Assembly (NCBI GenBank): GCA_025594325.1
Contig: JANHCV010000009.1
Coordinates: forward strand, 1,364,001-1,428,000
Reading direction: 5' to 3'
Source: Blastocladiella emersonii ATCC 22665
Taxonomy: Eukaryota; Fungi; Blastocladiomycota
Length of the DNA: 64,000 nt
Of this stretch, positions 11,825-16,109 are shown one piece after another (the first letter of the stretch is position 1; the number at the start of each line of letters is the position of its first letter). The notes beneath the pieces are model-generated. The model searched no databases. It was given only the letters and a program-made list of their open reading frames with translations, and had not been told where the DNA came from. Position numbers and translations under genes: made by a program.

Positions 11825-13351
11825 CTACTCGATAGACCCGCGGATCGTCTCGAACTTGCGGAACGTGAACCCGACAAAGGCGAGGTCCTTGTACAGCCCG
11901 TCGGCGGCGCCGCCGGCAGTTGCTCCGCCGTCGGCGCCCAAATCGTCGGACGCGCCCGCGGCGCCGGCGCCGTCGACGCTGGTCGGGACGTGCGTGAGGT
12001 CCTCGGTCGGGAAGTAGGAGGTATCCGTAATCGACTTGAGCTCCGGGACATAGGGCGGGCGCGAGCTGCGGAGCCGATCCCAGTCGACGCTGCGGAGGAA
12101 CGGGTGGGCCTTGATCTCGTGGGCGCCGTTGCGGCCGAGGCGGTTGGGCGCGTCGCACAGGAGCCGCTTGATGAGGTCCTCGGCCTCCCACGACAGGTGC
12201 ACGTCGTCGGGGATCACGAGCCAGTTCTTCCACGCCATGACCTTGCGGTACGTCTCCTGCGGGGTGTCGGAGCAGAACGGCGGGTACCCGACGAGACACT
12301 CGAACATGATGGCGCCGAGCGACCACCAGTCGCACTCCTTGCCGTAGCCCGTGCCGATGAAGACCTCGGGCGCAATGTAGTCCGGGGTGCCGACCGTCGA
12401 GTAGGCGAGCGCGCGCCGGTTCTTGCGCCACGTCGACACCTGCTCGACGCGCGACCGCGGGTCGATGTTGATGCTGGCGTGTTTCCCGTCGGCGGAGGCC
12501 GCGGCCGAGGACCCCGAGTCGGCGAGCCGCTGGTAGTAGCTCGAGTCGTGGGTCGGGTGGAACCCCGTGGCGAGCCCGAAATCGGTGAGCTTGAGGTGGC
12601 CGTCCTTGTCCACCAAGAGGTTGTCGGGCTTGATGTCGCGGTGGATGAAGCCGAGGGCGTGGACCGACTCGATGGCGGCGACGCACTCGGCCATGTAGAA
12701 GCGCGTGGCGTCCTCGGTGAAGGTGTCGTACTTGATGAGCATGGACATGAGGTCGCCGCCGGGGAGGAACTCCATGATGAGGTAGAGGAAGACGGGGTCC
12801 TGGAACGAGAAGTAGAGCTGGACGACCCACGGCGAGTTCTGGTCGACGGACATGGCGAGCAGGTCGCGCTCGGCCTTGACGTGGGCGAGCTGGTCCTTTT
12901 TCACCATGTCCGACTTGCGCAGCGTCTTCATGGCGTAGATGCGCCCGTTGTCGCGCTTCTGCGTGAGCCGCACCTCGCCGAACGCGCCCTTGCCGATCAC
13001 CTTGATGGTCAAAAAGTCGTCGACGCCGAGCTTGACGCGGCGGAACCGCAAAAAGTCGGACTCCTTGCGGCCGAGCGCGGCCAGCTGCCGGTTCTTGCGC
13101 TCGTCGCTGCAGTTCTCGTCGCGCACGCGGCGCTCCAGGTCCTGCAGCCGGTGCTGCCGCTCGAGCGTCGCGTCCAGCAGGTTCTTGTAGAAGACCTCGA
13201 GCTTGTACTTTGCGGTCGCCGCGCGGTCCAGCGTCGCCGTCGAGAAGCCCTCGGTCGTCCGCTCGAACGGGAACTCGCCCGCGGCGGCGGCCGCGGCGCC
13301 GTTGCCGTTGGCCTCGCCGCCGCCGCTGTCGTGCGCGTCGTGGTCGGCCAT
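11825..13351 (-). CDS. CBK1: NDR/LATS-family AGC kinase (Cbk1/Orb6/COT-1)
   Basis: [19 protein letters not shown], activation loop [16 protein letters not shown]-terminal MOB-binding region and C-terminal hydrophobic motif FVGFTF. Intronless, 508 aa. Confidence 0.96.
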
Positions 13352-13709
13352 GCGCGACGGGCGTGGGTGTGTCTAATTTGGAGCTAGGCCGAAGGCGCGC
13401 ACGCGCGTGGCGTGGATGGACGCGATCGGGGATGAGGCCGCCCGCGATGGATGAGCTGCGTGGAGGGGGCGCCCGTGCAGGGGGCCAAGTTACATGGGCA
13501 GCGGAGCGCGTCGACTCGTTCAAAAGCGGGAGAGAGCGAGAGCAGAGAGAGGCGCGCGCGCGGCGAGACGCAGAGAGGAACGCGCCGATGCCACACGTGC
13601 ACGTGCGCGACACGGGCCGCCGTCCCTCCCTTTCGTTTCGTTTTCTCTCGGCCGCGACCAGCTCTCCCTCTCCCAACCACCCCCATCACGCACTCTAACA
13701 CGCAAGCAA

Positions 13710-15032
13710 ATGAACCCCGAGATTGCGCAGCGCGTGGCCCTGGTCGGCGTCGGCGCCGTGGTGGGCGGCGGCGCCGCGTGGTTCCTGAGCAAGCGCTCGA
13801 CGACCCCCGCGGGCGTCGTGTCGGTGCCCGCGGGCAAGCCGATCGACGGCCCGGTGCCGATGCCGCACACGCTGTCGACGCCGGCCGGCAAGTCGATCCT
13901 GTCGCCGCGGCACGCCGAGCTGCTCAAGTACGGGCTGCCGACCTCGACGCAGCTGCAGCTCAAGGAGAACTACGTGTCGCTGGTCGACTACCGGCTGCGC
14001 GAGCCCGTGTGGGTCATGGAGCACCTGACCAAGGACAACCTCAAGGGCGGCGCCGACCGCGCCAACCACGGCTTCGTGCAGGACCACGACGTGCCCAAGC
14101 CGTACCGCCAGACCAACGACGACTACCTCAAGTCGGGCTACTCGCGCGGCCACATGTCGCCGGCGAGCAACAACAAGGTCACGCCCGACGCCATGAAGGA
14201 GTCGTTCCTGCTCAACTCCAACATTGTCCCGCAGGACCTCGACAACAACATGTTCTACTGGAACCGCATGGAGCAGTGGGTCAAGCACCTCGCCACCAAG
14301 AAGGGGTTCGACGCCGTCCACGTCCTGTCTGGCCCGCTGTTCCTGCCCTCCAAGGTCTCGCCCAACGGCCTGGTCATCGAGGCTTCGTCCAACTCGACCG
14401 CCCTCACCGTCCCGAGCGACCCGACGCACCTGTACCCGCCGTCGAGCGCCATCACGGTCCCGCCGCCCTCGGACGTGTACACGCCGCCGCCCGCCGACCT
14501 CGCCGAGCCCAACAACTCGATGATCCCGGCCAAGCCGTTCCACTACGTGACCTACAAGACCATCGGCGACACCCACGTCGCCGTCCCGACCCACCTGTTC
14601 AAGGCGGTGCTGGCCGAGAAATCGCAGGGCCCGGGCAAGCCGCCCGCCGTCTTCTTCGCGTCCTTCATCGTCCCCAACACGCCCATCAACGAGCGGCTGC
14701 CGCTGCGCGCGTTCCAGGTCCCGCGCGAGACGCTCGAGAAGTACGCTGGGTTCCGCGTCTACGACCGCGCCTTCGACATGATGCCCGTCACGGACCTGTG
14801 CGCCGTCAACGACCCCGACATGGGCAAGTCGGCCGAGGGCAAGACCATGTGCCAGCTCGAGCACGCGTCCGCCTTCAACTTCTTCGTCGCCGAGCGCGAG
14901 ATCGCCAAGGCCGGGTCGCGCGCCGAGCTCGAGAAGGCCATGGCCAAGGCCAACCAGACCGCGACCAAGTTCAACGTGCCCGTGCCGTCCAACCTGCTCG
15001 CCGCGTACGAGAAGCAGGCGCGCAAGTTCTGA
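13710..15032 (+). CDS. EXOG: Mitochondrial beta-beta-alpha-Me nuclease of the EndoG/Nuc1/EXOG family, EXOG-like
   Basis: N-terminal hydrophobic anchor (VALVGVGAVVGGGAAWFL), YSRGHMSPASNNK, SNIVPQDLDNN..YWNR, VAVPTHLFK and a C-terminal helical extension. The family call is firm; the EXOG subtype comes from a remembered comparison with animal EXOG. Confidence 0.88.
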   Translation: MNPEIAQRVALVGVGAVVGGGAAWFLSKRSTTPAGVVSVPAGKPIDGPVPMPHTLSTPAGKSILSPRHAELLKYGLPTSTQLQLKENYVSLVDYRLREPVWVMEHLTKDNLKGGADRANHGFVQDHDVPKPYRQTNDDYLKSGYSRGHMSPASNNKVTPDAMKESFLLNSNIVPQDLDNNMFYWNRMEQWVKHLATKKGFDAVHVLSGPLFLPSKVSPNGLVIEASSNSTALTVPSDPTHLYPPSSAITVPPPSDVYTPPPADLAEPNNSMIPAKPFHYVTYKTIGDTHVAVPTHLFKAVLAEKSQGPGKPPAVFFASFIVPNTPINERLPLRAFQVPRETLEKYAGFRVYDRAFDMMPVTDLCAVNDPDMGKSAEGKTMCQLEHASAFNFFVAEREIAKAGSRAELEKAMAKANQTATKFNVPVPSNLLAAYEKQARKF

Positions 15033-15105: not shown

Positions 15106-16109
15106 CTACTCATCGTCGCTCGCATTCGCCTCGTCCTCGCGGATCCGCTTGCGGTCCTGCTCGACGCGCTTGGCGTCGTCTGCTGGGTCGTAGTCGCGCT
15201 TGAGGCCCTTCATCTTGCGGGTCTGGATCTGGGTCACGTCCTGCTTGTGCATGTGGATGGTGCCGACCTTGTCGCCAAAGGCGTTGGTGGCCACGTTCTT
15301 GACCTTCTTGGGCTTGAGCTCCTTGGGCACGCGCAGCGCGTGCTTCCACAGCTCGGGCACCGGGTCGCGCACGCGGCGCGGGACCAGGTCCATGCGCGGA
15401 CCCATCTCGACCAGCTCGATGCGCGGCAGCTTCTGGCCCGACTTCTTGAGGTGCGTCGTGTACACGCGCAGGTGGATCTTGCCCGCGAGGTGGGTCAGGG
15501 CGATGCAGTACTCGAGCCCCGCCAGGTTCACCTTGCTCACGGGCTCGCCGCGGAAAAAGTCGACAAACAGGTTCTGCATGTTGCGCAGCTCGTCCGACGA
15601 CTCCCAGTCGCCCTGGAACAGCATGCACGGCTTCATGCCGATGCCGCACTTGGGGGTGTCAATGTCGTGCAGCGAGACAAACGCCTCGATGCCGAACTCG
15701 TACATGTCGAGCACCTGGTGGTCGAACATGCGCACAAACGTCAGGTCGTGCGGGCGCTTCTTGTTGTGGGTGCCGACGACCATGAGCGCCGCGTCGTTCT
15801 TCTGCGAGAAGAACTCGAGCCGCTGCGTGTCCTCGAACGGGTGCACGTCGTTCTTCTTGGTGAAGTTGACCGCGTGCGGCTTCTTGAGCGAGTACAGGTC
15901 CGCCAGCGCCGACTGCACCACCTGCGACGTGGTCGTCCCGCGGATCGTGATCACCGTCTTGGCGTTCTCGACCACCTTGGGCGCGCGGTTGTCGAGGAAC
16001 CGCTTGGTGCGCGCGTTTTTGGCCTTACTAGCGTCATCGGGGCGGCGTCAATCTCGGGTCGATTCATGGGTGGTCGCGGCAGATCCATTGCATACACTGT
16101 GCGGAGCAT
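15106..16109 (-). CDS. RPF2: Ribosome biogenesis factor Rpf2 (Brix domain)
   Basis: Exon 1 at 16109-16096 and intron 16095-16028 give MLRTVKAKNARTKRFL. Also KKNDVHPFED, RIELVEMGPRMDL and KIHMHKQD-like motifs. Confidence 0.94.

Follow-up and report, generated by a model that had tools for sequence, protein, structure and literature searches.

As a rule, EXOG is regarded as a trait of 'higher eukaryotes'. In the paper that founded the family in 2008, the duplication that separated EndoG from EXOG was dated after the split between animals and fungi (PMC2275078). Human EXOG (hEXOG) carries a helical bundle at its C-terminus, the Wing (residues 300-369), in which F307 and Y310 stack on the DNA's 5' end and R314 binds the 5'-phosphate (the 'tape measure'); the role of N171 in the core was assigned in the same work (PMC5418593). 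Outside animals, the combination of an SRGH motif with an EXOG-like tail was characterized in Leishmania in 2017, in an enzyme whose products are 5-7-mers and not dinucleotides (PMC5587815). The kind of enzyme that we describe here is already known and does not represent a new enzyme class. In a search of the openly accessible literature, we found no report of EXOG in fungi (chytrids, blastoclads) or of a re-dated duplication.

In this study, we have analyzed a stretch of 64,000 nucleotides of the blastoclad fungus Blastocladiella emersonii ATCC 22665 (contig JANHCV010000009.1), hereafter the window. We consider it likely that one of its genes encodes an orthologue that this blastoclad has of animal EXOG, i.e., a nuclear-encoded and probably mitochondrial Mg2+-dependent beta-beta-alpha-Me nuclease that is equipped with a Wing and, by analogy, would act as a 5'-3' exonuclease.

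Gene Structure and Genomic Context

The nuclease gene is complete and intronless. It runs from position 13710 to 15032 on the forward (+) strand as an uninterrupted ORF of 440 codons plus stop, and the encoded protein ends in ...LLAAYEKQARKF. A 437-aa homologue from Catenaria aligns to the 440-aa nuclease at 100% coverage. GC3 amounts to 0.98 along the entire ORF, and in the 3' flank of the gene the GC content drops to 33%. Upstream of the ATG at 13710, the frame stays open for 72 further codons from an ATG at 13494. This stretch (13494-13709 in the window) is rich in Arg and Ala and has no match in the Catenaria homologue, which makes 13710 the likely start; the open frame at 13494-13709 is probably 5' UTR.

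Both neighboring genes are uninterrupted ORFs on the reverse (-) strand. An NDR/Cbk1-type Ser/Thr kinase is encoded at 11825-13351 (Pkinase 1e-58, followed by Pkinase_C) and a Brix-domain ribosome-biogenesis protein on the other flank at 15106-15975 (7e-51). The spacers are short, with 358 bp 5' of the nuclease ATG and 73 bp (33% GC) at its 3' side. A six-frame hmmsearch of the window with the family profile revealed no second nuclease of this family besides the present gene.

Nuclease Core and Active Site

Pfam assigns a single domain to the protein, Endonuclease_NS (PF01223, DNA/RNA non-specific nuclease), with an E-value of 1.1e-42 over residues 69-350. Along with the match to human EXOG at 6e-47, this excludes, on sequence grounds, that the similarity to the EndoG/EXOG-type family is due to chance. 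The first half of the core (13905-14348, +) is delimited by PF01223 and the hEXOG alignment and is modeled with a pLDDT >95. Within it, the N-terminal segment LLKYGLP matches the hEXOG domain-swapped strand in the alignment. The second half (residues 278-357; 14541-14780, +) includes the VAVPTHLFK strand and G347.

The active-site motif is located at 14142-14153 (+), where the translation reads S145, R146, G147 and H148 followed by MSPASNNK, exactly as an earlier, sequence-only reading of this DNA had noted (SRGH, then M.PA.NNK). The serine of this motif is invariant among the blastoclad, chytrid and animal EXOG rows of our alignment, and the EndoG and Nuc1 rows all have Asp instead. Residues were mapped with an explicit alignment to human EXOG and the residue numbers of PMC5418593. 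The general base H148 corresponds to hEXOG H140, and R146, R117 and G347 to R138, R109 and G277, respectively. N180 (14247-14249, +), the equivalent of hEXOG N171, is the predicted Mg2+ ligand and occupies an invariant column of the 110-sequence alignment; H148, R146, R117, G347 and E188 likewise stand in invariant or near-invariant columns.

Sequence and Fold Similarity to EXOG

When all PDB sequences were searched with phmmer, the six best matches were human EXOG chains (E 6e-47 to 3e-45). Matches to EndoG of mouse or human, fly and worm came next (6e-40 and weaker), followed by bacterial NucA and the Serratia nuclease. The second stretch that aligns to human EXOG extends from residue 279 to approximately residue 412 and thus runs well inside the part that is absent from EndoG.

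The AlphaFold2 model, computed from the 110-sequence alignment, has a mean pLDDT of 85.9 and a pTM of 0.79, and low confidence is confined to the N-terminal 45 residues and to residues ~214-277. In a Foldseek search against the PDB, 21 hEXOG chains ranked on top (E 8e-31 to 2e-26, ~370 alignment columns) with TM-scores, normalized on the target, of 0.86-0.93, and the EndoG chains ranked after them (1e-24, ~290 columns). VIA-align superposed model residues 66-440 on hEXOG residues 60-354 (295 residues, rmsd 1.9 A, Z 35.3). The corresponding matches to EndoG and CPS-6 reached a Z of 30-31 and ended at model residues 354-367.

Wing-Like C-Terminal Domain

Residues 358-440 (14781-15029, +) constitute a Wing-like domain, as delimited by the VIA alignment, a tail-only hhalign comparison and the model, in which residues 380-440 have a pLDDT of 95-98. 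The domain is composed of the C364...C381 linker and three helices (386-399, 404-420 and 427-439). The C-terminal extension of about 80 aa that the sequence-only reading had pointed out is real: the SRGH motif is followed by 292 residues, compared to 158-207 residues beyond the DRGH that all of 21 named fungal Nuc1 proteins have. The pattern that it had given for the tail of human EXOG, C.L..F..F/Y...R.I..A.S...LEK.M, can be found back in both the phmmer alignment to human EXOG and the BLASTP alignment to coelacanth EXOG. Its suggestion that the tail folds like the Wing domain also holds, since the VIA alignment to hEXOG continues up to residue 440, with all three helices superposing on the hEXOG Wing, whereas the EndoG matches stop earlier. 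The tail is moreover homologous when considered alone. In a profile-profile comparison from which the core was left out, six blastoclad tails matched thirteen animal EXOG tails with 97.1% probability and an E-value of 5e-11 over 73 columns (hhalign).

The Pfam model Exog_C (PF18026) has no match to tail residues 355-440 at E<=10. This miss stems from the training of the model on animal sequences and not from another fold. The chytrid protein P0026 of Rhizophlyctis obtains 27.4 bits against a cut-off of 29.5, compared to 96.6 bits for coelacanth EXOG, and automatic pipelines have already attached Exog_C to at least one chytrid protein.

According to the alignment and the conservation table, F389, F392 and R396 (14874-14897, +) are the counterparts of hEXOG F307, Y310 and R314. 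Across blastoclads and chytrids, these three positions hold an aromatic residue (or His), an aromatic residue, and Arg or Lys, respectively. hEXOG binds the complementary strand through R320, R324 and K327. Of these three, only the last has been retained (K409), and the first two are replaced by G402 and E406. K400 and R404 are close to these replaced residues, and other blastoclads have an Arg at position 402.

The window protein might belong to the EXOG clade and yet work like the EndoG of Leishmania infantum (LiEndoG). Its Wing-like tail would then direct a dimeric endonuclease to ssDNA and to ss/dsDNA junctions, and oligomers rather than dinucleotides would be produced. It might also serve as the general mitochondrial endo/exonuclease of the cell, as Nuc1 does in yeast. 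LiEndoG has the SRGH motif, three helices in its C-terminal domain and a dimer-interface hairpin that is expanded, and is yet no bona fide exonuclease (PMC5587815); the window protein too has an expanded hairpin and lacks two basic residues of the Wing. However, the missing exonuclease activity of LiEndoG has been ascribed to an Ala at the position of hEXOG R314 (PMC5587815), which is an Arg (R396) here. In all blastoclads and chytrids examined, position 396 is Arg or Lys, and the stacking aromatic residues are kept. We therefore regard a LiEndoG-like or general nuclease role, taken together, as unlikely, though still deserving attention, and retain a 5'-3' exonuclease of the animal EXOG type as the preferred reading.

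Lineage-Specific Insertions and N-Terminal Segment

A Pro/Ser-rich, disordered insertion of 64 aa (residues 214-277; 14349-14540, +; pLDDT ~50) interrupts the two halves of the core. It is located in a beta-hairpin that is part of the dimer interface in hEXOG, where it stands in place of about seven residues (~205-211). The insertion is present in all blastoclad and chytrid rows of the alignment (including P0009-P0013 and P0026), which have a PPPxD motif in common; in the chytrid homologues, it occupies the same position and is of comparable length. It is missing from the rows of animal EXOG, all EndoG and all Nuc1. The Pro-rich insertion looks like a mark of the zoosporic-fungal EXOG lineage. 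The same hairpin has been expanded independently in Leishmania EndoG.

We also considered whether the insertion is an unspliced in-frame intron. This was ruled out: GC3 is 0.98 as in the flanking coding sequence, the candidate GT...AG pairs have a poor splice-site context, and the protein sequence is conserved in blastoclads and chytrids.

In blastoclads, the linker between the conserved cysteines C364...C381 is expanded by ~12 aa. Either the 64-aa hairpin insertion or this 12-aa linker insertion could alter dimerization or the motion of the Wing.

The N-terminus contains a hydrophobic stretch rich in Gly, Ala and Val (VALVGVGAVVGGGAAWFL). AlphaFold2 models a helix here at low confidence (residues 4-29; 13719-13796, +), which is a candidate inner-membrane anchor or targeting segment. 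Human EXOG has a transmembrane segment at residues 16-38 (PMC2275078). The sequence-only reading had taken the stretch for a membrane anchor. Its hydrophobic character stands, and its function as an anchor has to be toned down to plausible, with a best 19-aa Kyte-Doolittle mean of only 1.41 and a pLDDT of ~50. By analogy with the human enzyme, the nuclease probably resides in mitochondria.

Taxonomic Distribution

Database proteins that come closest to the nuclease are annotated as 'hypothetical proteins' and stem from Catenaria anguillulae (64% identity), Allomyces javanicus (64%) and Blastocladiella britannica (62%), with Sorochytrium and Coelomomyces as further blastoclad relatives. They are followed by chytrid proteins (two of Spizellomyces, and those of Fimicolochytrium, Quaeritorhiza and Rhizophlyctis) and then by animal 'nuclease EXOG' proteins of corals, sponges, echinoderms, molluscs, fishes and the coelacanth. 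The closest non-fungal named matches are all annotated as EXOG and nearly all have SRGH; among the 94 matches in total, the motif is present in nearly every one above E 1e-30. EukProt added the choanoflagellate Barroeca, the heterolobosean Percolomonas and the euglenid Ploeotia. The EXOG-type gene was found in six blastoclad and five chytrid taxa in total. No EXOG-type match from Dikarya, Mucoromycota or Zoopagomycota occurs among the 94 matches of this word-based search, and this absence suggests that Dikarya may have lost the EXOG type.

Relatives of the Nuc1 of the chytrid Terramyces are present in seven chytrid genera and in Mucoromycota, Mortierellomycota, Glomeromycota, Zoopagomycota and Dikarya. 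At least two chytrids possess both types: Fimicolochytrium jonesii encodes P0011 (SRGH, with Wing) and P0423 (DRGH, without Wing), whose cores share 37% identity, and Rhizophlyctis rosea encodes the EXOG-type P0026 and the Nuc1-type P0456. No blastoclad Nuc1-type protein is found among the best 120 of the 1863 relatives of chytrid Nuc1. This fits with a general nuclease role of the EXOG type in blastoclads, as discussed above, but since only the best 120 of the 1863 matches are considered here, it provides no evidence that blastoclads lack Nuc1.

Some unusual architectures were encountered as well. The representative search yielded proteins of 843-2106 aa that contain as many as five PF01223 stretches in tandem or are fusions (P0224-P0227, P0016, P0236, P0295 and P0337); P0016 unites glycosyltransferase domains and an SRGH nuclease in one protein. 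Three sequences from marine metagenomes or metatranscriptomes (P0067, P0073 and P0075) have DRGH and no Wing. A long branch (100/100) inside the clade of animal EXOG unites them, and they seem to derive from EXOG by reversion of Ser to Asp and loss of the tail. P0072 and P0074 are DRGH nucleases encoded on L001, a 573-kb ENA contig with tightly packed genes and one faint PsbP match. They form a clade of their own and keep an LC...C.L motif after the core without a helical Wing. They probably originate from picoalgae and possibly represent an intermediate architecture.

Phylogeny and Age of the EndoG/EXOG Split

A maximum likelihood tree was built with IQ-TREE (LG+C20+F+G4, PMSF) from 76 rows and 221 well-filled core columns, excluding both the insertion and the Wing, and was rooted with five bacterial nucleases. 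The animal EndoG rows were collected by a word search. Fungal Nuc1 seeds were obtained via a representative search with a DRGH profile and name look-ups, and further Nuc1 rows by a word search with the Terramyces Nuc1 as query.

As the sequence-only reading had anticipated, the protein groups with animal EXOG and apart from Nuc1 and EndoG. The EXOG-type clade (98/99) comprises animal EXOG, a choanoflagellate, sequences from Discoba and a fungal subclade of chytrids and blastoclads (99/93), in which the window protein falls within Blastocladiomycota (100/97). Fungal Nuc1 proteins, including those of chytrids, form a second clade (97/83), animal EndoG a third (100/99) and a small algal DRGH group a fourth; the branching order among the four is unresolved. 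Constraining all fungal sequences, EXOG-type and Nuc1 alike, to one clade was rejected (lnL lower by 67, p-AU 0.001), where it should be added that the clade tested was named after the tree was seen.

These results weigh heavily against the idea that a fungal nuclease of the Nuc1/EndoG type acquired SRGH and a helical tail by convergence. Such an origin could draw on the core fold, which is about as close to EndoG (Z 30-31) as to EXOG, and on the Cys...Cys pair after the core, which is shared by chytrid Nuc1 and algal DRGH proteins and is therefore not EXOG-specific. Yet, the EXOG clade is recovered at 98/99 from the core only, without any Wing columns, the AU test rejects a grouping with Nuc1 (p 0.001), the homology of the tail is significant on its own and chytrids have both types. 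Convergence is hardly credible in the face of these data.

Alternatively, zoosporic fungi might have obtained the gene horizontally, from an animal or a protist, in which case its presence would be uninformative on the age of the duplication. The topology within the EXOG clade indeed departs from the species tree, e.g., the choanoflagellate groups with the euglenid and metagenomic rows. On the other hand, blastoclads and chytrids make up one clade (99/93) that lies outside the animals and in which the two phyla are separated, and a lineage-specific insertion is common to both. The GC3 of 0.98 reflects a native-type, strongly biased codon usage throughout the gene, which six blastoclad as well as five chytrid taxa possess. 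We consider such a transfer quite improbable and return to orthology with animal EXOG.

The presence of two paralogues in fungi, one of which is orthologous to animal EXOG, implies that the duplication took place before fungi and animals diverged. The possession of both paralogues by Fimicolochytrium and Rhizophlyctis leads to the same conclusion. The proposal of the sequence-only reading that the EndoG/EXOG split is older than the animal-fungal divergence thus finds support in the core tree, the AU test and these two genomes. Consequently, the post-split dating of 2008 is wrong, because the EXOG-type clade spans fungi and animals and two chytrids have both types.

Discussion

Based on the biochemistry of hEXOG (PMC5418593, PMC6547421, PMC11880807), we propose how the Blastocladiella enzyme may function. 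An EndoG-like core, with H148 as general base, N180 as metal ligand and R146 and R117 contacting phosphates, would be capped by the three-helix Wing, and the protein would operate as a homodimer tethered in mitochondria. By closing the active-site cleft, the Wing would restrict entry to a DNA end. A 5'-phosphorylated end is predicted to dock on F389 and F392, with R396 binding the phosphate. R396 and R146 would then bracket the scissile bond, setting the cut at a fixed distance from the 5' end. Short 5' products would be removed from 5'-phosphorylated ends in this way, which amounts to a 5'-3' exonuclease. Such an activity would be suited to long-patch base-excision repair of mtDNA, to flap removal and to the removal of RNA primers or of the last primer ribonucleotides. 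By the same analogy, blastoclads may have an animal-like repair pathway.

With EXOG orthologues present in Blastocladiomycota and Chytridiomycota, and with Nuc1 beside them in chytrid genomes, the date of the duplication shifts back to a time before the opisthokonts radiated. The absence of EXOG from yeast and molds then becomes a loss, and the published history of the family is corrected. EXOG joins the list of 'animal-like' traits that zoosporic fungi have retained. In addition, microbial systems such as the transformable chytrid Spizellomyces come within reach for studying the role of EXOG in mtDNA repair and primer removal alongside Nuc1.

More tentatively, we put forward a broader scenario that may well prove too wide. 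EXOG would be one of two ancient eukaryotic lineages of mitochondrial beta-beta-alpha-Me nucleases instead of an animal invention. The two lineages would have been separate before opisthokonts diversified, possibly near the root of the eukaryotes given the SRGH/Wing homologues in Percolomonas, a euglenid and trypanosomatids. Repeated losses of EXOG would have followed, one of them in the ancestor of the non-zoosporic fungi, and blastoclads may keep the EXOG type alone, as their sole mitochondrial nuclease of the family.

Among the known enzymes, the window protein is best compared to human and animal EXOG (ENDOGL1; PDB 4A1N, 5T3V, 5ZKI). Both have SRGH, their catalytic His, Asn, Arg and Glu coincide, the cores are ~35% identical over the structurally aligned residues, and each protein has a hydrophobic N-terminal segment. 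The three-helix Wing superposes (Z 35 and rmsd 1.9 A for the whole chain), the equivalents of F307, Y310 and R314 are kept, and animal EXOG belongs to the same clade in the core-only tree. In contrast to hEXOG, the window protein has the 64-aa Pro-rich hairpin insertion and the 12-aa expansion between the linker cysteines; conservation does not extend to R320 and R324, the tail is missed by Exog_C and the host is a fungus.

The Leishmania infantum 'EndoG' (PMC5587815, PMC3971528), which we compared by its description, similarly comes from outside the animals and has SRGH; its C-terminal domain resembles that of EXOG and consists of three helices, and the beta-hairpin at its dimer interface is expanded. 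It differs by an Ala at the position of hEXOG R314, where the window protein keeps Arg, and by an acidic pH-sensor insertion. Fungal Nuc1 and animal EndoG have the PF01223 beta-beta-alpha-Me core in common with the window protein and presumably also its location in mitochondria, and yeast Nuc1 also has 5'-3' exonuclease activity (PMC2275078). However, these proteins have DRGH and no Wing, with 158-207 residues after the motif in the 21 fungal Nuc1 proteins versus 292 here, and they fall in separate clades, whereas the window protein combines SRGH with an 83-aa tail and stands outside both.
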